Source: Trichosphaerium sp. ATCC 40318 (taxonomy: Eukaryota > Protista > Tubulinea). From it: a DNA stretch of 64,000 nt. Within the stretch, counting starts at the first letter, position 1. Each line of letters starts with the position of its first letter. Shown piece after piece: positions 6,901 to 36,148 of the stretch. The DNA lies in the NCBI GenBank assembly GCA_038496445.1, contig JALMLS010000590.1:1-64000 (forward strand), written 5' to 3'. The translations under genes were made by a program, and so were the position numbers. Below the pieces are notes generated by a model. That model was not told the origin of the DNA. It saw only the letters and a list, made by a program, of their open reading frames with translations, and ran no database searches.

Positions 6901-7522
6901 GTACTGGTTTTTCTGAAATTTGTTTTTCAGGTATTACATTGTACGCTTCCTCCACATATGTGCACAACATCAAGAAACTGCCCAGTGCTTTGCTGACTTG
7001 AACGGTGTTTCTTACCTGGTACCAGTAATCAAACGATATTATAGACAAGAAATTGTCAATACAGTATGTGTGCCATGTCTTGGCACAATCAAAGAAATAC
7101 TCACCAGTGATTCCTGCTTATATCCGCCCAAAACACACATTACTGTTGTGTTGGAACCTTTAAAGGGTTTACATGACTGGATACAAGAGGATATAAACAG
7201 TAGATGTCCTAATCAGGTACCGTTGGTGTCTTCCAATATACCTTTGTCTGACTGTGTGTACAATAGGAAATATGGGACTTATTGGACAGTGTAGTCACAC
7301 TGTGCTATGACAATACTAAAGCCACTACAGAGGTATGTAAAAACGGTATGGTTCGTTAGTGCTAATTTCAATTGAAAGACTGCAGACTTGCTTGCCAAAC
7401 TGCAAACAACGTCACCTGTTGTTGCACCCAAAACAAACAAACAGAACAAGCAAACATTTACAGACATCAACAACATTGTAAATGATTTGTTGAATGACGC
7501 AGAGGGAGTAACAGACATATAA
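3906..7522 (+). CDS. DENN (AVL9/DENND6/DENND11-like) domain protein with C-terminal ARM/HEAT repeats
   Basis: N-terminal VAVAEFDINEGNTISSSYP and LYGIALFRNKSDATVKRGAIQKSL are uDENN-like. Later helical motifs (PNVRQAAAQTL, GVRKYSCEILGQL, GGGGVQTLL) resemble ARM/HEAT repeats. Stop TAA at 7520-7522. Confidence 0.65.
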
Positions 7523-7599
7523 CATTGTAAATCATATAAATACGTTGTATATTGTAGTTTATTGGTACCCCAATATTCAAAATGTTACATATATCAATT

Positions 7600-7672
7600 G
7601 GGCGAGTGGTGTAATTGGTATCACACGCCCTTAGCATGGGCGAGGTACCGGGATCGAAGCCCGGCTTGTCCA
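7600..7672 (+). tRNA. tRNA-Ala (anticodon AGC)
   Basis: Cloverleaf: acceptor GGGCGAG/CTTGTCC with G3:U70, anticodon arm CGCCC-TTAGCAT-GGGCG, T arm CCGGG-ATCGAAG-CCCGG. Confidence 0.96.
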
Positions 7673-7678
7673 ACCATC

Positions 7679-7683
7679 TTTTT
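7679..7683 (+). terminator. Pol III oligo-T terminator of the tRNA gene
   Basis: T5 run 6 nt after the discriminator base. Confidence 0.7.
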
Positions 7684-8162
7684 ACATTTTGTTTTTATAT
7701 TTTAATGGTTTTGATTAAGTCTACCAACAATGTTGTAATCGTTGTTCAGGTCTGAACATATGCATAGACACAATTTTGTACTTTTATCAGTGAAGAATAG
7801 ATTGGCATTGTTCTATGGTTGTCATCAGTCATTGGCCAATGTGGTCAAAGTGTATGTGTTGCTTAGTAAAAAAATGGTGAGTGGTATCCAAAGTGTAGCT
7901 ATGGTGGTTATGGCATGCCTTAAAATTGATATCTTCAAGCTTGACCAATTTTAAAAGTTGCTGGGTTGTTTCTATCAATATTGAAATTGAGATTTTGACC
8001 TGTACTAACTCCATATGGAACCTGTACTTATGTGACCCATATACTTAACTTGTATGGGTTTCATACTATTGATTTATACTTTAACCATACAGGTTACATA
8101 CAGGTAAAGTACAAATTGTAATTATTGGATACACAACATACCTTTTTTTCTCATATAATGTA

Positions 8163-8248
8163 CAGTGGTGGAATCAAACAAAATACGCGTGCCTAAAACG
8201 TGCCATTTGCGTGGAAAATAAACATGCCCAAAACGTGCCATTTGCGTG
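8163..8248 (+). mobile_element. Solo terminus of the palindromic element family
   Basis: CAGTGGTGGAATC is identical to the termini at 9959 and 25821, and is followed by the same subterminal units (GCCCAAAACGTGCCATTTGCGTG). Confidence 0.75.
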
Positions 8249-8699
8249 TTGTATCCATGACCTGTCCTTAATAGAAATTTGGTCAAAAATTCAAAAATAA
8301 AAAAATTGACAAACTCAAAACTCAACCATCTCACCCCAAAGCTGATCACTAACAATAAAACATGTATCTACAAGTAAACAGTAGTTATGTTTGTATCGGC
8401 ATGGCTTTAAAAGTAGGCAAAAAATGTAAAAATACCCAAAAACCAACAATTTCTTGATTTTTCTATTTTTTGTGAATAACTCAGGTCTACTAGTATGAAT
8501 CCTTTAAAAAAAAAGTATGGCCCACTGTTAGATACAATGCATGGTTTCATGGTGGTTTGGGTTCAGTGCCCCTTTTTTGTACTTTCAAGGTCCAAAAAGC
8601 CAAGCCCACATGCAGACAAAGGGTTATAGCAGCAACATGAAGAGTGTTGTGTTGATGCATGGAGATTGAACAACACTCTAGCAGCTTTCTTAATTTTAG

Positions 8700-8912
8700 T
8701 AATATGTGTGGCAAACTATGTAAAAAATGAAAAGTATATGTGATGGGTTGGTTGACCTCATGCATATGGTACAGCAAAGACTTGAGAGTGAGAACAAAAA
8801 GTGTTGGAGAAAGAGAATCACCTTGCTTGTTTCCATTTTTAATCTTAAATGTGAAACTATGCTGGAAGATTAGCCAACATGCATTGAATAGCCTTGTGAG
8901 CAACTGAGTCAA
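8700..8912 (-). pseudogene. Non-LTR retrotransposon reverse transcriptase fragment
   Basis: FKIKNGNKQGDSLSPTLFVLTL matches the non-LTR RT motif GxxQGDxLSPxLF. The flanks are degenerate. Confidence 0.75.
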
Positions 8913-9014
8913 AGTTTTTGAAAGACAACAAACACAAAGTCATAATCCTATTTCACCAGTTGTGAGTGCTAGGTGACACCACTTTTCTAACAGTAAAATC
9001 GGGAGTAGATAATG

Positions 9015-9310
9015 CAGTAGTAAAATCGGAAGTACGTGTGAAGTACGTATATTGTACGTGTGAAAAAGTACGTGGCACGTACGTATATTGTACGTGTCAA
9101 AATACGTGCCACGTACGTATTTCATCCGTGTGAAAAGTACGTGGCACGTACGTATATTGTACGTGTGAAAAGTACGTGCCACGTACGTATATTGTACGTG
9201 TGAAAAGTACGTGCCACGTACGTATATTGTACGTGCGAAAAGTACGTGCCACGTACGTATATTGTACGTGTGAAAAGTACGTGGCACGTACGTATATTGT
9301 ACGTGTCAAA
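9015..9310 (+). repeat. Terminus plus ~35-bp tandem subterminal array of a related DNA element
   Basis: Starts CAGTAGTAAAATCGGAAGTACG (compare CAGTGGTGGAATCGGACAGTACG), then about 7 units of GTACGTG(G/C)CACGTACGTATATTGTACGTGTGAAAA. Confidence 0.85.
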
Positions 9311-9375
9311 AGTTGGAATTTTGCCTCGTTTTGAACAAAAAATACTAAAAACGATGGATTGGTTTATTGGTAATT

Positions 9376-9448
9376 ACAACTACTTATACATTACAATACA
9401 TTACAATACACTACATACAATACATTACAATACATTACAATACATTAC
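9376..9448 (+). repeat. (TACAA/TACAT)n pentanucleotide microsatellite
   Basis: Directly visible tacattacaatacattacaataca... run. Confidence 0.8.
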
Positions 9449-9958
9449 CACTAAACGACCATGTTTCTGGAGATATTTCTATCATCATGCCTTACCGACC
9501 TACAACTGCAACTTAACCACCACAACTTAATGACTATTCAGAAAAATGCTTGAAACCCATAATCGTCTTTAAAAAGTGGTTTAATAGAGCTATTAAGCCA
9601 TAATATCCTTAAACTACTCCAAATACATATTTTCTGTCGTTTTTGCTTAAAAATGGTGCACCAAACCCCAAACCACCATGAAACCATGCATTGTACCTAA
9701 TTATACCTAATGCTACATTTTCTGAGTGGTTTGTACAGAGAGACCAAAGTTATGCAATAAAACAACAAAACACAGCAAAAAGCTACATTTTGCACTTTAT
9801 TAAGTTTTCTCCTCTAGTTTTTAAGTAAATGCCCTAATAATCCTAAAACACCCTCTCCTATTAATAATACATGGTTTCGTACCTTGCGACTACAAGCTGT
9901 CTGTTATTTTTTGAGATTTTTTTTTGAATTTTTTGGCTACCAAATGCCAGATTTTTTG

Positions 9959-10342
9959 CAGTGGTGGAATCGGACAGTACGCGAATGGCACGTTTTGGGC
10001 ACGTTTTGGGCACGTTTTTTTTCCACGCAAATTGCACGTTTTGGGCACGTTTTTTTTCCACGCAAAAGGCACGTTTCTCTTCCACATGCTGGCCACGCAA
10101 ATGGCACGTTTTGGGCACGTTTTGGGCACGCGGATTTTCCACGTTTTGGACACGTTTTGGGCACGCATATTTTCCACGTTTTGGGCACGCTTTGGACACG
10201 TTTATTTCACACGTTTTGAACACGTTTTGGGCACGCATATTTCACACGTTTTAAGCACGTTTTGAGCACGCATATTTTCCACGCAAATGGCACGTTTTGG
10301 GCACGCGTATTTTTCACGCAAATGGCACGTTTTGAGCACGCA
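9959..10342 (+). repeat. Left terminus and subterminal repeat array
   Basis: Many CACGTTTTGGG (11-bp) and CACGCAAATGG units. Confidence 0.92.
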
Positions 10343-10417
10343 TAATACAGCAGTTGTTAACAAATTTTATAATATTTATTTAATTATATAAACCAACAAT
10401 CGTTACAAATAAATACA

Positions 10418-12872
10418 TTACTGCTCACTATCATCATCTTCATCTTGACTATCATCATCACTTTCAACAATATCCTCCAAAGAAAATGGCAGAGCAGCAT
10501 CGTATAATGTTAAAAAATGTTGTCTGGGTTTTAGTACAAGTAAAACTAAGTATTTTTTAAATAAATCATAATGTCTTATTAACAACCTACCTCCTGGATG
10601 TTCATCAGCAAATTTAATGTTTTTTGAGCTCCATAAAGAAGTGAATAGTTGTCCTAGTTTGTTTTGACGTGCTTTTTTTACAGTAGGATTTCGGCAAAAA
10701 ATGTCAGGTGTTTTTATCTACAAAATAGTCAATTGAATATGATAAAAAGAACAAATAAGGCTTACCTTGGTGCAAAACTGTTTGACTGCTTCTAAAGTGG
10801 TTAAAGCAGCAGTACCTGGGTTGAAAATACTGCTGGATTTATATTGTATAGGTTCAAAAGAACTTTTCTTGCAATTGAAAGTTTGATTACAAACAAGTTT
10901 TGCAAATCTTGCAATAACATCTGCATCGTACTTGCAAGCTGTTTAAAATTAATGTCATTAAGTTTATTTGATAAAAACTATAACGTACTTGCAAAGTAGT
11001 AAACTTTGGCAAAAGAAGGACGTATAAAAAACAATGTCCAAGTGCTAATGTTGAAATAAATATTTACGATCGGAATAAAAAAAAAAGTACCACAGTGGTA
11101 GAAAATCATTATAAGTATCTACAGCAATTAGTTTGTCTTGTATTGGTACTGGCAATATATAATATTCTGCATAATCGTCATCTTCTGATTCTTTCTCTGA
11201 GTAACACAATACTTTGCCCACTTTAGTTTTTTTCTTTGAAAAAAAATTATTAATAATTCCCAATATTGAAATGATTGATCGTACTCTGGTAAGCATTTTT
11301 GCTGTTCTAGTTTTAGAAAACAATCCAATATTAGGTTCTTTAGCATCCACTAAAACTCTAAATGCAGCATGAGTAATGAATGGTGGCTATGGTTTGTACT
11401 GAAGTATCATATCGGTAAATGCTTGTAAAGAAGGAGCAACAGATTCTCTTGTAAATAAAAAACAATAATCTGCAATTGTACTGTGCTTTAATAAGCAATA
11501 CATGGGAGTATTCCATTGTAGTGTTGTGTAGTACTGTTCATCATCATCTATTGAAGTTCCATCTGATGGTCTGGGTTGTTCAACGATTGGTGATTTTTGT
11601 TTTGTTTTTTTTGGTTTCCTCTTTCGTAATAGACTTGATTCTTCTTTTTCTCCTTGTGCTTCATGTAATTTAAATGGAGTTATCAATTTTGGTGTAGTAG
11701 TTAATTCAGATGAGTCAGACGATTCACTACAACAATCAATGAATAAAAAGGAAACAACCAAAAAAAAAGAAAGCAAGCAATCGTACTCTAAACTGTCAAC
11801 AGGTGTTGAGGTTTTTTGTTGTTTGGAGGTGTTTTTTTTAGCTTTTATAGCTGTGAGATATAGTTCCATACCTTCTTCATCAAGCTGTCTAATAAATATC
11901 AATAAAACTTGAAATAAATGGAAAAAAAATTGTACTTGAACGATAGAGGTAAACTGGCCATCCCAATAAACATGCCCTTTTGTACAGGAACAAAAGGAAT
12001 ATGCTTGTTTTGCCATGCTTGTTTAGTAACTGCTTTTAAGTTGGCTATTAATCCATCAGTGCTTTGTTTGTAAAAACTATTGTCTGTATTTACGAATGCA
12101 ATTAATTTTTTCTCTATATGAATGTATCAGTTCAAATTTGTTAAAAATGGCTTGCCTGCAAGTTCAAAAGCATGGTCCTCATTCTCAGTGATATAATTGA
12201 AAAATTTTCTAGCAAATTGTCCCAATCGCCTGTTTACAGAATCTCTAATAAATTTTGACATTTTTGTTTTATGTATATCCTCCATTTCCGATCCAAATTG
12301 CACTTTGAATTGTTTGGCAAGCTCCACATAAAAAGTGTCATCTTTAATGTGAGTATAAGGAAAGGCAAATAGCAATTTGGATCGTATCCAATCCTAATTA
12401 TTTTTTAATTGTTAAGGGTTTTAAACAGATTTTTGGTTCAACGATCGTACCCATTTTCTCTTTTCAATGTCCTCAATTTGTTTGTGAGTTGTTATAAATT
12501 GTTTGAAGTTAGCTTCAATGGTCTTAACAGCTTTGGTTATTTCTAAAACACCTTTTTCAACATTTGAAAGTCTTTTATCCATCGCATCCTTCATAACATT
12601 TATTGAATTCATCAATTCATCTAAAAACAATTAAATAAGGCAAAAACTAGGTAAACGATCGTACTGGTGGTTATGTTACCATAGGAATTTTCCAAAATCT
12701 CTTCAACTGATTCTGCTTCATTATTATTAACCAATCGCCTTCTTTTCTCAACTGTGCTATTTGTTCTGGATCGTTTTCTTTTGTTTGGTTGTTGTTTGCT
12801 TTTTTGAGGAGAAAATTGTTCCATATAACTATTTAGATCGTTTATAGCATTCATACCTTGAGAATTGTCCAT
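10418..12872 (-). CDS. Element gene B, left-arm copy (coiled coil, degenerate Ulp1-like domain, acidic tail)
   Basis: Mirror copy of 22896-25351. Confidence 0.65.
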
Positions 12873-12950
12873 TGTATTGCTTTAATTAATTTAGAGATCG
12901 TAATTGAATTAATTTTACCAATCGTAAGTCTTGGCTTTTCAAAATTACTT

Positions 12951-15498
12951 TTATTTATATACATTATCCATAGTAACTACTCCTACATACAATAAATCAG
13001 TCTGTACATGGAGATTTTAAAAACTTACCTTTATTGGCCATCATTTGATTGAAGTTATTGATTTCTTCATTGTGATTTGTACTTTGATCGGAATAAGAAG
13101 GAACATAATAAGGAAGAGATTTACAACAACAACAATTAATGTTAGAAATACTGTAATCGTCTTCTATTTGATTAAAATGTAATCTTTCCTTACGAAATCT
13201 GGCAAAATCTTTACCATGCCATTTTGTTATGCCATGAAAATACCATTTTGTGATAACCCCTAAAGGTTTTTGACCTAAATTGTAAGTAAGTTGGAGTAGT
13301 ATATATGTACTTACTTGGTAAATGAGAAAATGCTTTGACATGGGCATCGTTATAATTAATTATTGGACATGGAGTTATAAAAAATGTACTTCCTTCATTT
13401 GAATCGTTTCCCTTCCAGTTTTTTTGTAAGAAAAGAGACTGAGTCAGTATTGTTTTGGCATGAGTTAAAGTGTTAGGATCTTCTGGCATTTCAATAAAAG
13501 CCCAAGAGTCATGTACAAATCTGTAAGAAAATAAATTATTATTAAATGGAAAATAACATTTGTTGATCGTACTCATAAGAAACAAATCTATTCTTAAGCA
13601 CAACCTTTGCTCCAACAACTACACTTCCTTGGAAAGTTTTACATTCTTGAGAAATCAAATTCATTAATTGCAAGCTAATCACGATTAGTAATTTCAAAAA
13701 TTGATTTTTTTACCCATAATTATTGTAGATAATTAAATCTCCTTCATGTATTGACTGTTGATTAGTTTGTGGGTTAACTGCAAAAGCAGCACGGATAAGT
13801 AAGTGTTTGTTTGCTTGGGTTAAAGGATCATTTAAATCCAAATACAAGGCATGCTTCCAAACAAAGTTTCTTTTATAAGGATTGTCCCATCGTAATAAAT
13901 TTTTCCTTAATAATTTCATTTTTTGTTGTACCACTGATGATATTTCTTCCTCTGGTTGCAATTGACGAAGAATGACACTGTAGAAGCCTTTATGCTGGTT
14001 GTTTTTAAATTGTACCCTTGCTCTATGTCTTATCGTTGAAGGCATGCCACCATGCAATGCCCAAGCAAAACTAATTCCATCTATTTGTACTGTTTTTTTT
14101 CTGGCTATTAAAAAAAATTGAACAATAAAAAAAATGTACATGCCATTACTTACCAATATCAGATAATTCAATCGTTTTAAAACAATCCACATGATTTACA
14201 TCATTTTTATCAGCAGGAAAACCAATTATTGTGATACCAGCAGTTGGATGTGCATGGCCTCCATCGGTGTGCCATCCCAAAGTGTTACTTTGTGTGTAAT
14301 ACTGTAAAAAAAATTACAAAAATATCAAAAATCGTAAAGAAATACCTTTATCTCTATGCTGTAATATTTAGAGTCATATTCTGTTTTAGTTTTACTGTGA
14401 CCCCATAATAGAAAGTGTAGTTTATATAAACGGTGCAAAATAGTATTGTCAGTGGCAGATAAAGGGTTAGGAGGATGACAATGATTATTGCCATAAAGAA
14501 TTGGATTATCAGTATCGTAAGGAGACAACCAAGGACCAGCTCCAAAAAAAGCTGCAGCATGTTTTGTCATGTAATTACATGTTAATAGATCAGTTGCTTT
14601 GCTTGCACGATACTAAATTCAAGTTAATACTTGTAAGAAAGAAATATGTACCATGTAATGTAATTTATCTTTATGTAATTCAATAAATTGTCTTAAATCG
14701 TTTATTGTGTTTGCCATATACTGAGACTCATTCTTAATAACATATAGATTAGTTGTAACTCCATCTTTGTCCAGTTTATGATATTTAAGATGTATATCAC
14801 ATTCAGCTGTAGTCAGCTAAAGGTTTTGTAAGCACTTAAAACAAAAAAAAAAGTACCTTATCTGATTTAAATGTACGATTTCTTGAGTCATCAAAATGAA
14901 TCGTAGGAATGTTGGATTTTGCTCTTTTTTTAATTTGTTTATGATAGCCATCCTTGAACACTTCTTCAGGATAGTCTGATCCTATATAAATGGTTTACAA
15001 ATAAATGGTTGCAAAATGTCATTACTTACTTCCTGTTGTTATTGAATCGTAAGCCAACCGGATTTGTTTAACACTAGGAGCTTTATTTAAAGCTGATTTA
15101 CTAGTGTGTTGATTTGTTACACTATCATATAAGGCTATATTACCAGCCACTTCATATAAGTGTTGTATAGAGCATTTTTCTCTACTACATAACTTGAACA
15201 AAAAATGTAAATATCGTAATAAGAATTCTGGATAATGTACCTCAACAATGACTTTTTGAGCAGCTTTTGATAACTGTTGTTGTGTAGGACGATGTATAGT
15301 TTTGATTTTATTCAATATGACATCTCTTTGTGGTTTTTGGACTTCTAATTTTATCTTAAAGTCTTCAGATGAATCTTTTTGTAAACCCATGCCATTGTTG
15401 TATTTGTATAATGTGAGTACTGCATCGTATATGGCCTTTGTATATTCCTTTCTAAGTGTCTTATTTATATCTATTGTAGTTTTGTTTACTACAGCTAT
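12951..15498 (-). CDS. Element gene A, left-arm copy (AlkB-type 2OG-Fe(II) dioxygenase plus BAH-like domain)
   Basis: Mirror copy of 20270-22817. Differs by KHALY versus KHVLY. Confidence 0.7.
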
Positions 15499-15639
15499 CT
15501 AAATTCGAATTAGCCATTGACAAGTAAAAAATTAAACATATCAAACAAAACTCATTGTTGGACATTGAACAGCATGGCCAATCGCAATATAACCCACTGA
15601 CAGCATATGAAGTGCAACATAATTGATAACAACATGTCT

Positions 15640-18600
15640 GATGGCAGCATAACAACCAGCACAATTGACATGGTCAACACGATTGTAACAAGCTGACACG
15701 ATTGACATAGCCAACATGATTGACGATTGCAGCATAGCCAACACGATTGACATGGCCAACACGATTGACATAGCCGACACGAGCCGACACGAGCCGACAC
15801 GAGCAGCATAGCCAACACGATTGACATAGCTGACACGATCGCAGCATAACCAACACGATTGACATAGCTGGCACGATCGCAGCATAGTCAACACAATTGA
15901 CATAGCTGACACGATCGCAGCATAACCAACACGATCAGCAACGATTGCAGCATAGCCAACACGATCAACATAGCCGACACGATCAACATAGTCAACATGA
16001 TTGACATGGCCAACACGATTGACATAGCTGACACGATCAGCATAGCCAACACGATTGACATAGCTGACACGATCGCAGCATAACCAACATGGTCAGCAAC
16101 GATTGCAGCATAGCCAACACGATCAACATAGCCGACACGATTGACATAGCTGACACGATCGCAGCATAACCAACACGATTGACATGGCCAACACGATTGA
16201 CATAGCCGACACGATCAGCATAGCCAACACGATTGACATAGCTGACACGATCGCAGCATAACCAACATGATTGACATAGCTGACACGATCACAGCATAGC
16301 CAACATGATTGACGATTGCAGCATAGCCGACACGATTGACATAGCTGACACGATACAGCACAGCTGACATGATTGCAGCATAACTGCCATGATTAAAGCA
16401 TAGCTGACACAGTACAGCACAATCGACACGATCACTGCAGCATAACCAATACGACTGCCACAGCATAGCCGATACAATACAGCACAGCCAACACGATACA
16501 GCACAACCGACACGATCACTACAGCATAGCCTATACGATCACTGTGGCATAGCCAATATCAATTACAGCATAATCGATGCGATAACTGCAGCATAGCTGG
16601 TACAATCACCGCAGCATAGCCGATACGATCACCACAGCATAGCTGATACGATCGCTGCAGCATAGCCGATACGATCACCACAGCATAGCTGACACAATCA
16701 CTGCAGCATAGCCGATACGATCACTGCAGCATAGCTGACACAATCACTGCAGCATAGCTGATATGATCACTGCAGCATAGCCGATACGATCACTGCAGCA
16801 TAGCTGACACAATAGCTGACACAATCACTGCAGCATAGCTGATATGATCACTGCAGCATAGCCGATAGCGATACGATCACTGCAGCATAGCCGATACGAT
16901 CACCACAGCATAGCTGACACAATCACTGCAGCATAGCTGATACGATCACTGCAGCATAGCCGATACGATCACCACAGTATAGCCGATACGATCGCTGCAG
17001 CATAGCCGATACGATCACCACAGCATAGCCGATACGATCACCACAGCATAGCCGATACGATCGCTGCAGCATAGCCGATACGATCACCACAGCATAGCTG
17101 ATACGATCGCCGCAGCATAGCCGATACGATCACCACAGCATAGCTGCACAATCACTGCAGCATAGCCGATACGATCACCACAGCATAGCCAATACGATCA
17201 CTGCAGCATAGCCGATACGATCACTGCAGCATAACTGACACAATCGCTGCAGCATAGCCGATACGATCGCTGCAGCATAGCTGACACGATCGCCACAACA
17301 TAGCCAATACAGCATAGCCAATGCAGCATAGCTGGTACGATCACTAGTACTACGCAACATAGCTGACACAGCATAGCCAACAAGATCGCCAACGATGCGC
17401 AGCATAGCTGATACACAGCATAGCCAACACGATCGCCAAACAATACATAGCATAGCCAATACACCATAGCCAACAAGATCGCGACGCAATCGCTAGCCGA
17501 TACACAGCATAGCTGATACAGCAAAGCCGACACGATTGCCAACCGATACGCAGTATAGCTGATACACCAAAGCCGACACGATCGCTAACCTATACACAGC
17601 ATAGCCGACACGATCGCTAACCGATACACAGCATAGCCGATACAGCAAAGCCAACACGATCTAACGATACGCAGCAAAGCCGACATGATCACCAGCCAAT
17701 ACGCAGCAGAGCCGACACGATCGCTAACCGATACACAGCAGAGCCGAAACGATCGCTAAAACCGATACGCAGCATAGCAATACAGCAAAGCCGACACGAT
17801 CGCTAGCCAATACGCAGCAGAGCTGAAACGATCACTAACCGATACGCAGCATAGCGATACAGCAAAGCCGACACGATCACCAGCTGACACGCAGCAAAGC
17901 CGACGCGATCGCTAACCGATACGCAGCATAGCCAATACAGCAAAGCCGACGTGATCGCCAGCCGATACGCAGCAGAGCCGAGCGATCGTGTCGGCTTTGC
18001 TGTATTGCTATGCTGCGTATCGGTTTTAGCGATCGTTTCGGCTCTGCTGTGTATCGGTTAGCGATCGTGTCGGCTCTGCTGCGTATTGGCTGGTGATCAT
18101 GTCGGCTTTGCTGCGTATCGGTTAGATCGTGTTGGCTTTGCTGTATCGGCTATGCTGTGTATCGGTTAGCGATCGTGTCGGCTATGCTGTGTATAGGTTA
18201 GCGATCGTGTCGGCTTTGGTGTATCAGCTATACTGCGTATCGGTTGGCAATCGTGTCGGCTTTGCTGTATCAGCTATGCTGTGTATCGGCTAGCGATTGC
18301 GTCGCGATCTTGTTGGCTATGGTGTATTGGCTATGCTATGTATTGTTTGGCGATCGTGTTGGCTATGCTGTGTATCAGCTATGCTGCGCATCGTTGGCGA
18401 TCTTGTTGGCTATGCTGTGTCAGCTATGTTGCGTAGTACTAGTGATCGTACCAGCTATGCTGCATTGGCTATGCTGTATTGGCTATGTTGTGGCGATCGT
18501 GTCAGCTATGCTGCAGCGATCGTATCGGCTATGCTGCAGCGATTGTGTCAGTTATGCTGCAGTGATCGTATCGGCTATGCTGCAGTGATCGTATTGGCTA

Positions 18601-20130
18601 TGCTGTGGTGATCGTATCGGCTATGCTGCAGTGATTGTGCAGCTATGCTGTGGTGATCGTATCGGCTATGCTGCGGCGATCGTATCAGCTATGCTGTGGT
18701 GATCGTATCGGCTATGCTGCAGCGATCGTATCGGCTATGCTGTGGTGATCGTATCGGCTATGCTGTGGTGATCGTATCGGCTATGCTGCAGCGATCGTAT
18801 CGGCTATACTGTGGTGATCGTATCGGCTATGCTGCAGTGATCGTATCAGCTATGCTGCAGTGATTGTGTCAGCTATGCTGTGGTGATCGTATCGGCTATG
18901 CTGCAGTGATCGTATCGGCTATGCTGCAGTGATCATATCAGCTATGCTGCAGTGATTGTGTCAGCTATGCTGCAGTGATCGTATCGGCTATGCTGCAGTG
19001 ATCGTATCAGCTATGCTGCAGTGATTGTGTCAGCTATGCTGTGGTGATCGTATCGGCTATGCTGCAGTGATTGTGTCAGCTATGCTGTGGTGATCGTATC
19101 GGCTATGCTGCAGCGATCGTATCAGCTATGCTGTGGTGATCGTATCGGCTATGCTGCGGTGATTGTACCAGCTATGCTGCAGTTATCGCATCGATTATGC
19201 TGTAATTGATATTGGCTATGCCACAGTGATCGTATAGGCTATGCTGTAGTGATCGTGTCGGTTGTGCTGTATCGTGTTGGCTGTGCTGTATTGTATCGGC
19301 TATGCTGTGGCAGTCGTATTGGTTATGCTGCAGTGATCGTGTCGATTGTGCTGTACTGTGTCAGCTATGCTTTAATCATGGCAGTTATGCTGCAATCATG
19401 TCAGCTGTGCTGTATCGTGTCAGCTATGTCAATCGTGTCGGCTATGCTGCAATCGTCAATCATGTTGGCTATGCTGTGATCGTGTCAGCTATGTCAATCA
19501 TGTTGGTTATGCTGCGATCGTGTCAGCTATGTCAATCGTGTTGGCTATGCTGATCGTGTCGGCTATGTCAATCGTGTTGGCCATGTCAATCGTGTTGGTT
19601 ATGCTGCGATCGTGTCAGCTATGTCAATCGTGTCGGCTATGTTGATCGTGTTGGCTATGCTGCAATCGTTGCTGACCATGTTGGTTATGCTGCGATCGTG
19701 TCAGCTATGTCAATCGTGTTGGCTATGCTGATCGTGTCAGCTATGTCAATCGTGTTGGCCATGTCAATCATGTTGACTATGTTGATCGTGTCGGCTATGT
19801 TGATCGTGTTGGCTATGCTGCAATCGTTGCTGATCGTGTTGGTTATGCTGCGATCGTGTCAGCTATGTCAATTGTGTTGACTATGCTGCGATCGTGCCAG
19901 CTATGTCAATCGTGTTGGTTATGCTGCGATCGTGTCAGCTATGTCAATCGTGTTGGCTATGCTGCTCGTGTCGGCTCGTGTCGGCTCGTGTCGGCTATGT
20001 CAATCGTGTTGGCCATGTCAATCGTGTTGGCTATGCTGCAATCGTCAATCATGTTGGCTATGTCAATCGTGTCAGCTTGTTACAATCGTGTTGACCATGT
20101 CAATTGTGCTGGTTGTTATGCTGCCATCAG
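15640..20130. repeat. Central head-to-head satellite of the palindrome
   Basis: Core ATCGT(G/A)TCGGCTATGCTG. Units are 18/20 bp in the outer zones, 23 bp in the middle zones and ~30 bp at the centre. Orientation flips at 17980/17981. Confidence 0.95.
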
Positions 20131-20269
20131 ACATGTTGTTATCAATTATGTTGCACTTCATATGCTGTCAGTGGGTTATATTGCGATTGGCCATGCTGTT
20201 CAATGTCCAACAATGAGTTTTGTTTGATATGTTTAATTTTTTACTTGTCAATGGCTAATTCGAATTTAG

Positions 20270-22817
20270 ATAGCTGTAGTAAACAAAACTACAATAGATA
20301 TAAATAAGACACTTAGAAAGGAATATACAAAGGCCATATACGATGCAGTACTCACATTATACAAATACAACAATGGCATGGGTTTACAAAAAGATTCATC
20401 TGAAGACTTTAAGATAAAATTAGAAGTCCAAAAACCACAAAGAGATGTCATATTGAATAAAATCAAAACTATACATCGTCCTACACAACAACAGTTATCA
20501 AAAGCTGCTCAAAAAGTCATTGTTGAGGTACATTATCCAGAATTCTTATTACGATATTTACATTTTTTGTTCAAGTTATGTAGTAGAGAAAAATGCTCTA
20601 TACAACACTTATATGAAGTGGCTGGTAATATAGCCTTATATGATAGTGTAACAAATCAACACACTAGTAAATCAGCTTTAAATAAAGCTCCTAGTGTTAA
20701 ACAAATCCGGTTGGCTTACGATTCAATAACAACAGGAAGTAAGTAATGACATTTTGCAACCATTTATTTGTAAACCATTTATATAGGATCAGACTATCCT
20801 GAAGAAGTGTTCAAGGATGGCTATCATAAACAAATTAAAAAAAGAGCAAAATCCAACATTCCTACGATTCATTTTGATGACTCAAGAAATCGTACATTTA
20901 AATCAGATAAGGTACTTTTTTTTTTGTTTTAAGTGCTTACAAAACCTTTAGCTGACTACAGCTGAATGTGATATACATCTTAAATATCATAAACTGGACA
21001 AAGATGGAGTTACAACTAATCTATATGTTATTAAGAATGAGTCTCAGTATATGGCAAACACAATAAACGATTTAAGACAATTTATTGAATTACATAAAGA
21101 TAAATTACATTACATGGTACATATTTCTTTCTTACAAGTATTAACTTGAATTTAGTATCGTGCAAGCAAAGCAACTGATCTATTAACATGTAATTACATG
21201 ACAAAACATGCTGCAGCTTTTTTTGGAGCTGGTCCTTGGTTGTCTCCTTACGATACTGATAATCCAATTCTTTATGGCAATAATCATTGTCATCCTCCTA
21301 ACCCTTTATCTGCCACTGACAATACTATTTTGCACCGTTTATATAAACTACACTTTCTATTATGGGGTCACAGTAAAACTAAAACAGAATATGACTCTAA
21401 ATATTACAGCATAGAGATAAAGGTATTTCTTTACGATTTTTGATATTTTTGTAATTTTTTTTACAGTATTACACACAAAGTAACACTTTGGGATGGCACA
21501 CCGATGGAGGCCATGCACATCCAACTGCTGGTATCACAATAATTGGTTTTCCTGCTGATAAAAATGATGTAAATCATGTGGATTGTTTTAAAACGATTGA
21601 ATTATCTGATATTGGTAAGTAATGGCATGTACATTTTTTTTATTGTTCAATTTTTTTTAATAGCCAGAAAAAAAACAGTACAAATAGATGGAATTAGTTT
21701 TGCTTGGGCATTGCATGGTGGCATGCCTTCAACGATAAGACATAGAGCAAGGGTACAATTTAAAAACAACCAGCATAAAGGCTTCTACAGTGTCATTCTT
21801 CGTCAATTGCAACCAGAGGAAGAAATATCATCAGTGGTACAACAAAAAATGAAATTATTAAGGAAAAATTTATTACGATGGGACAATCCTTATAAAAGAA
21901 ACTTTGTTTGGAAGCATGTTTTGTATTTGGATTTAAATGATCCTTTAACCCAAGCAAACAAACACTTACTTATCCGTGCTGCTTTTGCAGTTAACCCACA
22001 AACTAATCAACAGTCAATACATGAAGGAGATTTAATTATCTACAATAATTATGGGTAAAAAAATCAATTTTTGAAATTACTAATCGTGATTAGCTTGCAA
22101 TTAATGAATTTGATTTCTCAAGAATGTAAAACTTTCCAAGGAAGTGTAGTTGTTGGAGCAAAGGTTGTGCTTAAGAATAGATTTGTTTCTTATGAGTACG
22201 ATCAACAAATGTTATTTTCCATTTAATAATAATTTATTTTCTTACAGATTTGTACATGACTCTTGGGCTTTTATTGAAATGCCAGAAGATCCTAACACTT
22301 TAACTCATGCCAAAACAATACTGACTCAGTCTCTTTTCTTACAAAAAAACTGGAAGGGAAACGATTCAAATGAAGGAAGTACATTTTTTATAACTCCATG
22401 TCCAATAATTAATTATAACGATGCCCATGTCAAAGCATTTTCTCATTTACCAAGTAAGTACATATATACTACTCCAACTTACTTACAATTTAGGTCAAAA
22501 ACCTTTAGGGGTTATCACAAAATGGTATTTTCATGGCATAACAAAATGGCATGGTAAAGATTTTGCCAGATTTCGTAAGGAAAGATTACATTTTAATCAA
22601 ATAGAAGACGATTACAGTATTTCTAACATTAATTGTTGTTGTTGTAAATCTCTTCCTTATTATGTTCCTTCTTATTCCGATCAAAGTACAAATCACAATG
22701 AAGAAATCAATAACTTCAATCAAATGATGGCCAATAAAGGTAAGTTTTTAAAATCTCCATGTACAGACTGATTTATTGTATGTAGGAGTAGTTACTATGG
22801 ATAATGTATATAAATAA
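20270..22817 (+). CDS. Element gene A, right-arm copy: AlkB-type 2OG-Fe(II) dioxygenase plus BAH-like domain (start codon not resolved)
   Basis: Splicing about 8 GT-AG introns gives one open frame containing SIEIKYYTQSNTLGWHTDGGHAHPTAGITIIG...WALHGGMPSTIRHRARV...GFYSVILRQ, then YEFVHDSWAFIEMPEDP...GVITKWYFHG...ERLHFNQIEDDYSISNINCCC. Stop at 22815-22817. Confidence 0.72.
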
Positions 22818-22895
22818 AAGTAATTTTGAAAAGCCAAGACTTACGATTGGTAAAATTAATTCAATTACGATCTCTAAATTAATTAAAGCAATACA

Positions 22896-25351
22896 ATGGA
22901 CAATTCTCAAGGTATGAATGCTATAAACGATCTAAATAGTTATATGGAACAATTTTCTCCTCAAAAAAGCAAACAACAACCAAACAAAAGAAAACGATCC
23001 AGAACAAATAGCACAGTTGAGAAAAGAAGGCGATTGGTTAATAATAATGAAGCAGAATCAGTTGAAGAGATTTTGGAAAATTCCTATGGTAACATAACCA
23101 CCAGTACGATCGTTTACCTAGTTTTTGCCTTATTTAATTGTTTTTAGATGAATTGATGAATTCAATAAATGTTATGAAGGATGCGATGGATAAAAGACTT
23201 TCAAATGTTGAAAAAGGTGTTTTAGAAATAACCAAAGCTGTTAAGACCATTGAAGCTAACTTCAAACAATTTATAACAACTCACAAACAAATTGAGGACA
23301 TTGAAAAGAGAAAATGGGTACGATCGTTGAACCAAAAATCTGTTTAAAACCCTTAACAATTAAAAAATAATTAGGATTGGATACGATCCAAATTGCTATT
23401 TGCCTTTCCTTATACTCACATTAAAGATGACACTTTTTATGTGGAGCTTGCCAAACAATTCAAAGTGCAATTTGGATCGGAAATGGAGGATATACATAAA
23501 ACAAAAATGTCAAAATTTATTAGAGATTCTGTAAACAGGCGATTGGGACAATTTGCTAGAAAATTTTTCAATTATATCACTGAGAATGAGGACCATGCTT
23601 TTGAACTTGCAGGCAAGCCATTTTTAACAAATTTGAACTGATACATTCATATAGAGAAAAAATTAATTGCATTCGTAAATACAGACAATAGTTTTTACAA
23701 ACAAAGCACTGATGGATTAATAGCCAACTTAAAAGCAGTTACTAAACAAGCATGGCAAAACAAGCATATTCCTTTTGTTCCTGTACAAAAGGGCATGTTT
23801 ATTGGGATGGCCAGTTTACCTCTATCGTTCAAGTACAATTTTTTTTCCATTTATTTCAAGTTTTATTGATATTTATTAGACAGCTTGATGAAGAAGGTAT
23901 GGAACTATATCTCACAGCTATAAAAGCTAAAAAAAACACCTCCAAACAACAAAAAACCTCAACACCTGTTGACAGTTTAGAGTACGATTGCTTGCTTTCT
24001 TTTTTTTTTGGTTGTTTCCTTTTTATTCATTGATTGTTGTAGTGAATCGTCTGACTCATCTGAATTAACTACTACACCAAAATTGATAACTCCATTTAAA
24101 TTACATGAAGCACAAGGAGAAAAAGAAGAATCAAGTCTATTACGAAAGAGGAAACCAAAAAAAACAAAACAAAAATCACCAATCGTTGAACAACCCAGAC
24201 CATCAGATGGAACTTCAATAGATGATGATGAACAGTACTACACAACACTACAATGGAATACTCCCATGTATTGCTTATTAAAGCACAGTACAATTGCAGA
24301 TTATTGTTTTTTATTTACAAGAGAATCTGTTGCTCCTTCTTTACAAGCATTTACCGATATGATACTTCAGTACAAACCATAGCCACCATTCATTACTCAT
24401 GCTGCATTTAGAGTTTTAGTGGATGCTAAAGAACCTAATATTGGATTGTTTTCTAAAACTAGAACAGCAAAAATGCTTACCAGAGTACGATCAATCATTT
24501 CAATATTGGGAATTATTAATAATTTTTTTTCAAAGAAAAAAACTAAAGTGGGCAAAGTATTGTGTTACTCAGAGAAAGAATCAGAAGATGACGATTATGC
24601 AGAATATTATATATTGCCAGTACCAATACAAGACAAACTAATTGCTGTAGATACTTATAATGATTTTCTACCACTGTGGTACTTTTTTTTTTATTCCGAT
24701 CGTAAATATTTATTTCAACATTAGCACTTGGACATTGTTTTTTATACGTCCTTCTTTTGCCAAAGTTTACTACTTTGCAAGTACGTTATAGTTTTTATCA
24801 AATAAACTTAATGACATTAATTTTAAACAGCTTGCAAGTACGATGCAGATGTTATTGCAAGATTTGCAAAACTTGTTTGTAATCAAACTTTCAATTGCAA
24901 GAAAAGTTCTTTTGAACCTATACAATATAAATCCAGCAGTATTTTCAACCCAGGTACTGCTGCTTTAACCACTTTAGAAGCAGTCAAACAGTTTTGCACC
25001 AAGGTAAGCCTTATTTGTTCTTTTTATCATATTCAATTGACTATTTTGTAGATAAAAACACCTGACATTTTTTGCCGAAATCCTACTGTAAAAAAAGCAC
25101 GTCAAAACAAACTAGGACAACTATTCACTTCTTTATGGAGCTCAAAAAACATTAAATTTGCTGATGAACATCCAGGAGGTAGGTTGTTAATAAGACATTA
25201 TGATTTATTTAAAAAATACTTAGTTTTACTTGTACTAAAACCCAGACAACATTTTTTAACATTATATGATGCTGCTCTGCCATTTTCTTTGGAGGATATT
25301 GTTGAAAGTGATGATGATAGTCAAGATGAAGATGATGATAGTGAGCAGTAA
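22896..25351 (+). CDS. Element gene B, right-arm copy: NLS and coiled-coil protein with a degenerate Ulp1/C48-like domain and acidic tail
   Basis: Splicing gives a continuous frame from MDNSQG to DEDDDSEQ*. It has an NLS-like KRKRSR and a segment YYILPVPI...TWTLFFIRPSFAKVYYF resembling the Ulp1 beta core. The domain call is tentative. Confidence 0.65.
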
Positions 25352-25426
25352 TGTATTTATTTGTAACGATTGTTGGTTTATATAATTAAATAAATATTAT
25401 AAAATTTGTTAACAACTGCTGTATTA

Positions 25427-25821
25427 TGCGTGCTCAAAACGTGCCATTTGCGTGAAAAATACGCGTGCCCAAAACGTGCCATTTGCGTGGAAAATATGCG
25501 TGCTCAAAACGTGCTTAAAACGTGTGAAATATGCGTGCCCAAAACGTGTTCAAAACGTGTGAAATAAACGTGTCCAAAGCGTGCCCAAAACGTGGAAAAT
25601 ATGCGTGCCCAAAACGTGTCCAAAACGTGGAAAATCCGCGTGCCCAAAACGTGCCCAAAACGTGCCATTTGCGTGGCCAGCATGTGGAAGAGAAACGTGC
25701 CTTTTGCGTGGAAAAAAAACGTGCCCAAAACGTGCCCAAAACGTGCAATTTGCGTGGAAAAAAAACGTGCCCAAAACGTGCCCAAAACGTGCCATTCGCG
25801 TACTGTCCGATTCCACCACTG
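25427..25821 (-). repeat. Right subterminal repeat array and terminus
   Basis: Mirror of 9959-10342 with one extra 11-bp unit. Confidence 0.92.
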
Positions 25822-26290
25822 TCAGTACTGAATAGGGTAGGAGAGAGTGGGTTACCTTGTCTTGTATGTATCATGTTCAACTTTGAATGTTCTGTTGGAG
25901 ACAACCCCATTAATTCTAACAGCAACTTGGATTTGGAGCTGCCCAACAATGGCCTTAGCCATGACAGGAGAGAGACCAATGTGGATGAGAATTAGTATGA
26001 GTACATTGTGTGCACAGCTATCAAACGCCTTTTTGTTGTCCAATGGGCAAAGAGAGAGTGGAGTACCTTTATTATGATGAGCTTCAACTTTTTCCAATGT
26101 GGCAATTTGGTTATCAACTATATCACAACCTGGAATAAAACTGTTTTGGTTAGGACTTATCATGCTAGGTAAAAATTTGAGTAGCCTTTTATTGATGACC
26201 TTCATGATAGTTTGATAGTTAAAAGGTACCTGGACTACAGAAATGCCTTGAAATTGTCAGCAATGGAACATATGTCTGGAATAAAAAGAC
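25822..26290 (-). pseudogene. L1/Tx1-type non-LTR reverse transcriptase fragment, truncated by the palindrome end
   Basis: YQTIMKVINKRLLKFLPSMISPNQNSFIPG...LDNKKAFDS..., then a frameshift, then RQGNPLSPTLF abutting the terminus at 25821. Confidence 0.88.
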
Positions 26291-26603
26291 CACCTAAGTG
26301 AAATGGTAGCAAAGTTTTATTTGAATAAAGCACTGGAATAGTGTAAAGTTAACATGAGAGTTGAGTGAAGTAGAAGAAGCATGGTGAGAAAATATAAAAA
26401 AAAAATCATCCACTGACATCCAAACACTGGCTAATTGCCATGGTAGTAAGTGAAGACAGCTAGAAGTAAAATCCTTTAGGAGATGTTGCATGCTTTGCTT
26501 AATTCTGGAAGCCTCCTTAAGACTGGACACTGGTTGAGTGAAAATGATTACATTAGTGAGAATCAACAGGATATTGAAAAGCTGCAAGATTTATTATTTT
26601 ACA

Positions 26604-29600
26604 TTAAGCCAAATAAGATGCAGAGTTGGATTGTTTAATAGCCTGTACTTGTTCATAGGAGAATAACTAAACAACAATCAACAGAAAAATAAAGCAACAA
26701 AAACCAACCTGTTCTACTTCAACCCATTGATCTTGGTGAGTTCTGTTAAAGCTTCTTAATGCTTCAGCAACAGCTTCATTTATTGGATTTGGAGCATTGC
26801 GGTGACTGGCTATTTCCTCCCTATTGAGTAGTTAGTTTAATAGCACAACCACTTGGGACTTGCATTATACTTGGTAACCACTTTGGCAAGCTGTATGGAC
26901 AACTCTCTGCAATGGCAATCAAACCCAACACAGCCCCATGACGTTTAGCAATTGCCAGTTTTGCATCTGTTATGTTGTTTAGTGGCAATAACCTGCACCA
27001 CATGTGTACCTTTGGCGTTTAACAGTTTTATTTGCTTTTTAGACAAAGGCAATGCTTGTAACTTGAACCCATCAACCAATTTATCAACAGTCCATGCTGT
27101 TGACTTAATGATTGATGACAGACAAGTTTTGGCAACATTTCTGACTTCAACCTGGACATCCACCAAGCTTTGAGATACAAACACTAAAATGTGTTCAACA
27201 TCTTGTTTAGACATAACACATGCGTGATTGAATGTCAATATCCTAAACAACAGCTCAATTGGTGGGCAGGAAATACAGAAACATGCACATACTGAAGGAA
27301 TGGAAGCAATGCAACGCGCACTCTCCACGCAGGATGGTCAGCTACCACCTGGATTTGTGAATAGATTATATCATGAATATCTTTCTTGCTGTATAATATT
27401 TGTGAAGCAAGGGCCAATACAGCTCGTGCCAAATTCCTGGTTGGGTGAGTTAAACACATTGTAATAAATGGGAGACTATTGTACCTAACGTCTTCATGTA
27501 ATGCCACATGAAGTTTTAGAATAATTGGTAAAAGCTGTGGCAAGTAGTGAACCATAGGTGATGAAATAGAAATACTGAGAACCATCTATTATTATTGGGA
27601 AAAGTTAAAAATCAAATGAACGCTAACAACGCTTATCATACCCATTCAAGTATTGTTTCACATGCATGTGCTATCGTGTCATTATCGGCAACTTTAAGCG
27701 CAATGTAATTTTGGAGTATTTGTTTGAACTGCTGGACGTAAGATTGCAACGTTGAATCAATTGTCAGCTTCCATTTTCCCTGTTGTTGATAGGACCTGCC
27801 TAACTCGAATACCTACAACCCCTAAGCATTGTGTATGCTATGTGTATACACTGTACCTTGCTTATGATGCTTGCTATTTGCTGGCGCACACGCTTGTAGT
27901 CATGGCCGAGTATATTCGCATCAGATACTGATTTTAGTAATGCCACTAGCCCACACTCAATTCAAATATGCACAAGTAAAACGTACAGGCTTTTGGGTAC
28001 GACCGCCAAGAAGTTCCAATGAGATATGCTTCTATAAAGGACAGCTTCTTTATCAGAGATGTGGATGACTGGTTAGGATCAAACTCAATTGAGTCTAGCT
28101 CTTGTGGTATAAAACTGCAGCGTCTAGGATCCCTACTAGATTTTAGCAAATCGAAATAACCACGCAGTTGTGTGTGGTAACTGGTGTACCTGTCTTGTGC
28201 CGCATAACGCAATGCGAACTGCCAATCGTTGAGAGATTGTGGGGATTCGAATTTAGCGTGTAATGCACGTGTGATGACGTCTTGAGCGAGTTTGCACTAT
28301 TCAAATATGTTAGCCGCACTGTTGTTAACAATAACTAAAACAAAAGCATCACGCACCATGACAATACTACGAGCGTAGTCCGTCTTATTTGAGGCGAGGA
28401 CTAGTCCAATGAAGATCTCAATAACTACACATTGTCTAGGTAGAACCACAATATTAGCTGTGGCCACATGGATGAAACACAAACGCACGAAGCACGTGAA
28501 GTGGACGTCGCCTTCTCTAGGAGTAATTCTCTACAGGCTTCACAAGCACCATCAACCATGTCAAAGATGGCCATCCAAAAGTATGTTAGTTCTACGCCAC
28601 CACGTGAACTATTAGACGCAAAGCTCACAGACCTGCCATATTTGTGAGCGTGGATAGTGGCGTAAAGTTGTAGGGTAGGAAACGTACTCAAAGGAAGCGG
28701 TCATGTGGAAAAGGTTGCTCATCGATGATTTTAGCAGGTTAACTCCAGACAAGCCACGACCATTGTCTCCTGACTTGGTAAAAACGTATTGCTCTTCCAA
28801 TCGTGTCAGGAACTGCTCTAGTTGAGGTCGTTCAACCAACCACGTCAAGCTGCGTAGCAATATAGGGGAAGGTGTCAGCGGTTTGTTTGCTGAACTCGTT
28901 TCAGGTCGTAGAGGATAATTGGTTGATGTAACAGCGCCATTCCACCCGACCCAACCATTGTCAATAAATCCAAAGCCATCGTATTCATTTCCCGTAGGTG
29001 TGGTTAATGAAGTAAGCGATGCAGGCGTTATATCCGCATTGGTATTTTGTGTTTGCGATGGAGAAATTTGAGCGTGTGCTGTGACATAACCAATTGCCAC
29101 GTTCCTCACCCAAGCCAAGGACTCCATAAGTGTCGTTTGCTTAACAGGTACAGGTTAACAAACAATGTGCGAAAAGTAACGAGCCAAGAGAGAGGAGGCC
29201 GTACAAGCGTGTCTTGATCAAGTGAAGTTAATTCGCAAGGCATGTTGGACTGGGATAACATCACCAATGACATGATGCCCATCGCCTTGTATCGCCAATG
29301 ACCATCTGCTTTGCCTACAAATGATGATAGCATCTTCATGACATTTTCTTTACTCTCATCAATGGTCTTTGACCTAGTCGCCATCGTAAAGTTAGCGGTA
29401 CACAAAACAGAAAAAAAGAGTTTGTACAATTCTTTATAATCTTGTTCGGCAGCCGATGCTTCGCTTGTGGACAATTGTAAATTACCTGTTGCAATGATTA
29501 CCACCAAAAACTGAGCAAGAAGCGTGTAAGAACGTACCTGTAGGCAATCCAAATCTTGGGTCATCCAGCCGCTTGTACGCTTTGACGCAACTACAATATA

Positions 29601-34433: not shown

Positions 34434-36148
34434 TCATCGTCTTGTTTTTCTGAGCCTTTTCTTAGCGCGATTAGACTTGAAGTTTAGATTTGTACTGCCT
34501 TCATGATCCTTTGAATCTTGTGAGCGCATACGCTTTCTGTGTGCAAGTTGATCGTAGCCGCCTGTTTCCTTCATTTCCTACAACCATCATTAGTATTTTT
34601 TTTGCATTTCTTTTTTTTTTTGTTTGATTTTACTATCACTATCACTATCACACAAATGACGTACGATTGCAGCTGACCTTTGCGCTTCTGTTACACGCTC
34701 AGTGAGAACAGTGACGAGATCCTCATCATGCTCGTATTCCTCCATCTTTTTGCCAATGTATTTCTCTATGCGTTGAAAGTACTCAACATTGTATTGTGTC
34801 ACCATTGTAATAGCCGACCCATGCTGGCCCGCACGTGCCGTACGTCCAACACGATGGATGTATGTCTTTGAGGAAAGCGGTATATCGTAATTTACAACAA
34901 GATCTACCTTTGGTAAATCGAGACCTCGGCTACCAACATCGGTGCAAACGAGGACATTTGTGTGTTTCTTCGAAAAGCTATCAAGGTTGGCAAGACGCGT
35001 GGCCTGTGTCAACTTGCTGTGTAAAGGTGTTGCATGAAAACCTAGATGCTTCAATACGAGAGCCATCTTTTGTACAAGCACACATCTATCCAGGAAGACG
35101 ATTATCTGCGATCCAGGATATTGTGTCACTATAAAAAAAGGCAAAGTGTCAGCGATAACATTTTTGTGGATTCTAGCACAACTACAAAGTAATAATCTAC
35201 TTGCAAAAAGCATTATTCAGTCACGCACATATATAGGCCAAGTAGGCATCCCTCCTATTAGCTGGGAAAAACAAGTAATACTGCTTCAGCGTATCAACAG
35301 TCTCATATTTTGTATTTACGCTGATCATCACAGGCTTCATGACGGCCACCTTTTTCAATTTTTCAACGCGATGTGTCATCGTCGCAGAGAAAAGCATCGT
35401 TTGCCTGTTTGCGCTTATCTTTTGTAGTATTCTCTTGAGCTCGTCTGCAAAGTCCATTGACAATAGTTTATCTGCCTCATCAAGTACCTACGACAATTGT
35501 AAGTGGTTGGCTTTACCCCCGCTGCAGTGTTGGGATTGCGCACCAAGTATTTTAGCGAGCGTTCCAAAGAGAACCCCTTTGTATTTTGTAGGTGATCTAA
35601 TACACGCCCAGGAGTTCCAACAATGATGTGTGGTTTTTTAGCGAGCTCTATAGCTTGTTTTACAACCGTTATTCCGCCTGTGATCGTTACTGTTTGAATA
35701 CCTGTATATTGGATAAGTGTCATGTCAATGTTGATGCCACGAACCAATACGGGCGCCCAATTGGAATACTTGTTTGTTAATTTGGTGAGCGAGTTCTCTA
35801 AAAGCCATAAGACAGCGTATATAGTCGTATAACGTACCTTGTAGGCGTGAGAATTAACGCAAAAAGCGGTGAGGGATTTTCCAGCAAAGATTGCAGAATA
35901 GGTAGTACAAACGCAGCTGTTTTACCAGAACTATTAAATAAACGTTAAAAGTGAAAGATTAAACGTTATTACCCTGTTTGTGCCAAACCTACAACGTCTT
36001 TACCTTCTAGCGCAGGTGGAATCGCTGCTGATTGGATTTTTGTTGGTATTTTCCACTCTAGCCCGGCGCAAGCGTCGCATAGGACATCACGTAGACCAAG
36101 AGCCTCGAAAGTCTTCCCAACATCAAAAGCGTCCTTAGAGAGATCCAT
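34434..36148 (-). CDS. DDX47: DEAD-box RNA helicase DDX47/RRP3
   Basis: Q motif [63 protein letters not shown] and [13 protein letters not shown]. Confidence 0.9.

Follow-up and report, generated by a model that had tools for sequence, protein, structure and literature searches.

In this work, we analysed 64,000 nucleotides of the genome of Trichosphaerium sp. ATCC 40318 (contig JALMLS010000590.1, positions 1 to 64,000), referred to below as the window. The window carries a mobile-element-like insert which forms a near-perfect palindrome of 15.9 kb (9959-25821), and the CpG dinucleotides of this element are the subject of the present analysis. An alignment of the left half to the reverse-complemented right half spans 7858 columns and contains 6 mismatches and 5 gaps (99.5% identity), and the copies of the unique arm parts differed by 1 substitution and one single-base length difference. 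From each end inward, the element consists of an inverted terminus, a subterminal array (~390 bp), a unique arm (~5.3 kb, G+C content ~31%) and a central satellite shared by the two halves (Table 1). The termini at 9959 and 25821, with their subterminal arrays, are reverse complements of each other, and a target-site duplication was not seen, as the bases adjoining them on the outside show no agreement at 2-8 bp. The satellite is built from units of 18, 23, 32, 46 and 77 bp, each type of which contains ACGAT followed by a pyrimidine, and its centre, near 17805-17980, is imperfect. The main observation is that the CpGs which persist in the unique arms are concentrated in this same pentamer (ACGAT, or ATCGT on the other strand), which exceeds its neutral expectation in DNA that is otherwise stripped of CpG.

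Within the gene-bearing part of the right arm (20221-25400; 5180 nt, G+C content 30.7%), the ratio of observed to expected (o/e) CpG is 0.46. Of the 56 CpGs in this region, CGAT accounts for 33 and ATCG for 11; 44/56 are thus in one of the two contexts, which is exactly the result of an earlier count (about 44 of about 56) in the initial annotation of this DNA. The share expected had been given there as roughly a quarter, and the base composition of the arm yields ~22% (binomial P ~9e-19). The in-context share of the host DNA is 12.5% (217/1736), and the host genes, as had also been stated, are not purged of CpG (o/e 0.89-0.93). Among the sixteen CGNN contexts, CGAT is the only one with an o/e above 1 in the arm (1.50), compared with 0.70 in the host and 0.10 in the CpG-poor flanks of the element. 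The real unit is the pentamer, which contains 36/56 CpGs, usually as W-ACGAT-Y (W, A or T; Y, pyrimidine). The base preceding CG was A in 36 cases, C in 5, G in 3 and never T, and the base following CGA was T in 44 cases, A in 7 and never C or G. A pyrimidine follows ACGAT at 26/36 arm sites and at 64/67 satellite sites, and the information in the motif spans five or six positions. Outside the motif, CpG is strongly depleted in the arm, with 20 sites or ~0.2 of expectation (~5-fold). The satellite has a CpG o/e of 1.15-1.39 and 67 ACGAT sites per half, and the earlier statement that it is built from the same motif was borne out by its CpG contexts (Table 1). The description of the element as purged of CpG except in CGAT/ATCG holds for the unique arms but not for the subterminal arrays, which have 35-36 CpGs each, ~30 of them in RCGTG/CACGY (R, purine). 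This second CpG motif occurs in the subterminal arrays only, and CpGs persist in the element where they belong to reiterated motifs.

The placement of the motif is independent of coding. In the modelled coding sequence (CDS), the sites are distributed over the three phases as 3/9/5 on the sense strand and 2/3/1 on the antisense strand, and 13 sites are outside exons. Sites thus occur on both strands and also in introns and spacers. Where synonymous codons could form a CpG, they do so almost exclusively if the product is ACGAT. The threonine codon ACG was used in 3/10 cases where the next codon starts with AT versus 0/80 elsewhere, NAY codons ended in C in 9/21 cases before GAT versus 0/55 before other G-initial codons, and the arginine codon CGA was used in 5/8 cases between A and T versus 4/45 elsewhere. 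Codon or amino-acid usage was thus rejected as the cause by the occurrence of sites in all phases and on both strands and by an effect that is strongest outside exons. Of the two explanations that would have made the CGAT bias uninformative, a general bias of the host and codon use, neither applies; the host has no such bias, and codon use does not explain it.

It could still be argued that no biology is involved, i.e. that the pattern arises from chance, from codon or amino-acid usage, or from an assembly artefact which copied one arm. Amino-acid composition does inflate some pentamer counts, and the near-identical arms double the apparent sample; since they are mirror copies, only one arm counts as independent evidence. 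Nevertheless, one arm alone gives P ~2e-10 to 5e-23, and the strength of the effect outside exons speaks against amino-acid composition. A simple fold-back artefact of the assembly is unlikely, because the outer flanks of the palindrome are dissimilar and indels distinguish the two halves of the satellite. We consider an origin without biology to be scarcely credible.

The motif is not only retained, it is in excess. Base composition predicts 10.1 ACGAT sites in the arm, dinucleotide frequencies 3.8 and a second-order model 9.4. The 36 sites present amount to an excess of 3.6-fold over base composition and 9.5-fold over the dinucleotide expectation; the corresponding host ratios are near 1. 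ACGAT is the strongest pentamer outlier in the arm (z 16.5), and it has the highest raw count of any pentamer composed of three A/T and two G/C (160 once the strands are collapsed). The non-CpG members of this class have a mean of 11.2, with 20 as the 95th percentile and 27 as the maximum. The expectation is ~10-11 sites per 5.2 kb at any G+C content, and therefore survival alone cannot yield 36 sites. In non-exon DNA (1139 nt, G+C content 25%) there are 13 sites versus 1.9 expected (~7-fold), and the CpG o/e of 0.95 in this fraction is due to the motif alone; exons contain 23 sites versus 8.1 expected. No internal duplications were found in the arm, and the ACGAT sites are therefore independent. 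Inflation of the site count by such duplications was ruled out in this way.

The initial annotation had offered another origin for the bias, namely that the host methylates CpG in repeats, that deamination of 5-methylcytosine erodes it, and that CpGs adjacent to ApT escape through the flanking preference of a methyltransferase, through antagonism between adenine and cytosine methylation, or through local oxidation. Part of this model stands, as the CpGs outside the motif are depleted, the host is unbiased, the satellite shares the motif and codon use is excluded. In addition, both flanks of the element show classic decay, with a CpG rho of 0.17-0.20 and a TpG/CpA ratio of 1.48-1.50, which shows that this genome is subject to CpG erosion. 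The observation that NAY codons take a final C before GAT at the neutral rate, and never before another G, would also follow from escape. In the left flank, all 4 residual single CpGs in 7677-9035 outside an end-like fragment are in ATCG, in agreement with the earlier remark on the few CpGs that remain there. On the other hand, escape predicts a frequency at or below neutral, and the excess of ACGAT therefore weighs against it; sparing cannot lift a motif 3.6-fold over neutral expectation, to the top of its class and ~7-fold outside exons. The right flank (25822-28000) served as the control; the left flank was less suitable, since it contains family-related fragments and leans toward ATCG. In the right flank, where the CpG o/e is down to 0.09 in some 1-kb windows, the CGAT/ATCG contexts account for only 2/23 CpGs (Fisher P 8e-9 versus the arm). 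This flank is depleted yet unbiased, and therefore the genome erodes repeat CpG without generally sparing the CGAT context. Moreover, the TpG/CpA ratio of the arm (1.28) is near that of the host (1.22-1.25) and not at the level of the flanks, the sequence requirement covers five to six bases and bars T ahead of CG, which is more than an adjacent ApT, and the satellite is CpG-rich and yet based on the same word. Escape of ApT-adjacent CpGs from methylation or decay is, on this evidence, a doubtful explanation for the motif.

The arrangement of the sites bears on a second alternative, in which ACGAT acts in RNA, as a sense-strand signal for splicing or for RNA binding in the transcripts of the element. 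The arm sites are oriented 26 sense to 10 antisense (P 0.011). GTACGAT, which had been noticed earlier at several intron donors, is found 6 times on the sense strand and at 4/15 modelled donors, and three GTACGAT donors account for 5/13 non-exon sites. Hexamers of the GTACG type are frequent in the host as well. However, a signal in RNA would not account for the ten antisense sites, for sites in spacers beyond the modelled genes, or for the location of most sites away from splice junctions. The motif strand of the satellite is in each half opposite to the arm majority, and therefore there is no element-wide polarity. A function in RNA is thus very improbable. As separate observations, the hexamers GTACGT and GTACGA occur 48 and 29 times in the host DNA (1-7500 and 28000-64000) versus 27 for GTAAGT, which suggests that CpG-bearing intron starts of the GTACG type are common in this host, and GTAC occurs 30 times in 20221-25400 versus 10.8 expected from dinucleotides, which intron starts of the GTAC type explain only in part.

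The motif could also have a mutational or recombinational origin, if satellite fragments or conversion tracts had seeded the arms or if a sequence-specific mutational bias created ACGAT. ACGAT is indeed the core of every satellite unit type, and the edge of the right arm beside the satellite (20113-20340) grades into degenerate units. Against seeding, the arm sites share W-ACGAT-Y and no more with the satellite units, they lie in all phases inside open reading frames that remain unbroken, and the arm has no internal repeats. We regard such an origin as very unlikely.

Three genes were modelled in the arm, with the strand running from the centre outward and with uniformly short introns of 39-61 nt. 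The splice model is heuristic and follows the longest stop-free path through GTA...YAG introns, and the searches for homologues were made exon by exon, with 20 exon-level pieces compared with Pfam. None of these pieces matched a Pfam family at E values up to 1, no DNA-binding domain was detected in the modelled proteins of the element, and Pfam found no transposase family in the stop-free stretches of the arm. In the modelled gene 2 product, a basic stretch leads into a helical region. Gene 1 holds H-x-D and H...R stretches, from which the initial annotation had read a dioxygenase of the element's own. This assignment was not supported; no TET/JBP or other 2-oxoglutarate-Fe domain was found by Pfam, by phmmer among 1.84 billion representative proteins or by sequence searches of PDB. 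The 129-residue exon of gene 1 with the putative second metal ligand had no match among the same 1.84 billion proteins, nor in PDB, metagenome contigs or viral contigs. Its single-sequence AlphaFold model has low confidence (predicted local distance difference test, pLDDT, 43.8) and is too poor for a fold search. The dioxygenase is therefore no more than a putative one, read from a short motif. The arms differ in length by a single base (11387-12016 on the minus strand versus 23752-24382), inside a modelled intron; this leaves the left copy with one long open frame, compared with two in the right copy, and under the splice model neither is disrupted.

Table 1. Features of the palindromic element and of its surroundings in the window.
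Feature	Coordinates	Strand	Remarks
Whole palindromic element	9959..25821	.	Inverted termini start CAGTGGTGGAATC; two mirror arms and central satellite
Left terminus and subterminal array	9959..10344	.	11/35-bp units of GGCACGTTTTG type; 35 CpGs, 1 in CGAT/ATCG; RCGTG/CACGY context
Left unique arm (mirror of right arm)	10345..15655	-	57 CpGs, 45 in CGAT/ATCG
Left-arm copies of genes 1, 2 and 3	~12997-15390, 12127-12872, 10418-12016	-	Coordinates by mirroring
Central satellite, itself palindromic	15656..20112	.	4.4 kb, G+C content ~50%; 310 CpGs, 243 in CGAT/ATCG
Right unique arm (region of the finding)	20113..25424	+	AT-rich, CpG-poor; 36 ACGAT/ATCGT sites
Modelled gene 1	20378..22771	+	9 exons, 2043-nt CDS, introns 39-52 nt; orphan
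Modelled gene 2	22896..23641	+	3 exons, 645-nt CDS; both donors GTACGAT; orphan
Modelled gene 3	23752..25351	+	6 exons, 1353-nt CDS, acidic C-terminus; orphan
Right subterminal array and terminus (mirror of 9959-10344)	25425..25821	.	36 CpGs, 1 in CGAT/ATCG, 31 in RCGTG/CACGY
tRNA-Ala (AGC) gene	7599-7676		Directly abuts CpG-poor repeat cluster
Left flank, CpG-poor	7677..9958	.	End-like fragment 8164-8250; 35-bp tandem array 9030-9313; residual single CpGs lean ATCG
Right flank, strongly CpG-depleted	25822..27500	-	CpG rho 0.17, TpG/CpA 1.48; weak reverse-transcriptase match 25852-26205

Relatives of the element were looked for in metagenome and viral contigs by tblastn-type scans, and none were found. 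Searches with the element terminus in genome and viral collections gave no match, a scan for the subterminal-repeat word returned 3 metagenome loci which have the simple repeat alone in common with the element, and Rfam detected no RNA family within the window. The window itself contains 1 end-like fragment of the element's family outside the palindrome. Its first 13 bases are those of the terminus of the element and are followed by repeats of the subterminal type, and it is probably a remnant of another family member. Also to the left of the element, amid CpG-poor DNA, the 35-bp tandem unit at 9030-9313 is present in eight copies, is rich in CpG of the ACGT type, and resembles the subterminal arrays solely by common CACGT-like words. 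The position of the repeat cluster next to the tRNA gene is compatible with a possible tRNA-adjacent insertion. In the right flank, the DNA from 25852-26205 on to ~27500 (minus strand) is degenerate and reverse-transcriptase-like, with an RVT_1 match at E 1.9e-4, below the Pfam cut-off. Beyond the flanks, the window contains CpG-normal, intron-rich host genes for DDX47-like, myosin, Sec23/24, PSME4-like and UPF0004 radical S-adenosylmethionine (SAM) proteins. In a length-limited search that excludes full-length proteins, an exon of the DDX47-like gene (34590-35213, minus strand) shares 86% identity with a protein from a 1.5-kb metagenome contig of the Joint Genome Institute (JGI; sample 3300044452) and only ~50% with all other eligible matches. 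For one host open reading frame, a look-up of the exact protein gave no match.

Several known systems share parts of this organization. The erosion of CpG in methylated repeats by deamination of 5-methylcytosine is well established. CpG methylation directed at transposable elements has been reviewed across eukaryotes (PMC12344493). As in such erosion, the unique arms and both flanks of the element are CpG-poor and the host genes are not; unlike in it, one pentamer is exempt and over-represented, and the TpG/CpA ratio of the arm is near the host level. Cut-and-paste DNA transposons such as Ac/Ds and En/Spm of plants carry subterminal repeats to which the transposase binds. The reiterated CpG-bearing 11-bp arrays near the inverted termini of the element are similar, and terminal inverted repeats are present. 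The ACGAT motif, in contrast, is not subterminal and extends through genes, introns, spacers and a 4.4-kb satellite, no transposase was found in the searches described above, and the target-site duplication of this class was not seen. In transposons of the foldback type, the long inverted arms consist in part of tandem repeats, and the element is like them in its very long, near-identical inverted arms and in a tandem unit length that changes along the arm. It differs in that its large satellite is central and its arms carry intron-bearing genes, and neither a target duplication nor, in the window and the collections searched, other copies were seen. Hypermutation of the RIP type would concentrate transitions in one sequence context when duplicated copies are compared; the arms of the element, at 99.5% identity, differ at very few sites.

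DNA transposons that carry a TET/JBP dioxygenase have been described in fungi (PMC12730594). The likeness to them is in the idea alone, i.e. an element with an anti-methylation enzyme of its own, as the initial annotation had proposed. The element fails the tested features of these transposons (PMC12730594), because neither a 2-oxoglutarate dioxygenase domain in its exons nor a transposase was detected. Short words are reiterated across replicons as the initiator-protein sites of parvoviruses and as the Chi or uptake sequences of bacteria. In the same way, the element has a word of 5-6 bases far above expectation along its whole length and a dense array of it in one place. It is, however, inserted in a eukaryotic chromosome, most CpGs of its arms are in the word, and a reader of the word is only proposed. 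By analogy, the element would in its logic most resemble replicons in which a short word for protein recognition is dispersed over the full length.

We hypothesize that ACGAT, usually as W-ACGAT-Y, is a maintained recognition motif of the element, common to the arms and the satellite of an otherwise CpG-stripped sequence, and we put the probability of this reading at roughly 0.45, i.e. somewhat below even. A protein would read the motif, and the other CpGs would have been lost through CpG-directed methylation and decay, or through selection avoiding it. The motif is packed about once per 20 bp in the central satellite and spread through the gene-bearing arms about once per 144 bp, and the remaining CpGs of the arms would have been lost or avoided via the CpG-directed process evidenced by the flanks. 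The arm sites, with a mean spacing of ~144 bp, are placed more evenly than chance would have it (coefficient of variation, CV, 0.68; P ~0.01). The likeliest reader would be a sequence-specific DNA-binding or DNA-modifying factor, encoded by the element or by the host, which engages the whole element.

Several points weigh against a maintained recognition motif. There is one element only, with arms that are copies of each other, and the collections searched gave no relatives in which individual sites could be compared. No motif-binding or motif-modifying protein was identified in the exon-level searches, and all three modelled genes are orphans. The use of NAC before GAT (9/21, 43%) is not significantly different from the neutral rate (63/189, 33%), and plain sparing explains it. 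Splicing may hold some of the GTACGAT sites, because 5 of the 13 non-exon sites are at donors and GTACG-type hexamers are common in the host. Lastly, the excess of 130-195-bp gaps between arm sites was spotted post hoc and there is no long-range period; a nucleosome-like periodicity was rejected for these reasons.

A bolder extension of the recognition-motif reading, which we consider unlikely, is that the element labels itself with ACGAT. The sites would be bound or chemically marked, at intervals of about nucleosome scale, by a factor linked to the element, the satellite would be a dense nucleation array, and the genes of the element would thereby escape CpG-directed silencing. It would mean that the transposon carries a sequence-addressed form of anti-silencing, from which the CpGs that could not be addressed were removed.

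A shortage of CpG in repeats is commonly taken for a scar that methylation has left passively. Here, the surviving CpGs are nearly all in one five-base word, which shows in synonymous codon choices, at intron starts and in spacers, and which has been expanded into a satellite. If ACGAT is merely the blind spot of a methyltransferase, a flanking rule of five to six bases would be unusually long for CpG methylation in a eukaryote. If, on the other hand, ACGAT is addressed for binding or modification, it would supply a concrete motif for modification and occupancy data, and the element would offer a compact way to follow, in the sequence itself, the mutual influence of a mobile element and a CpG-directed defence.

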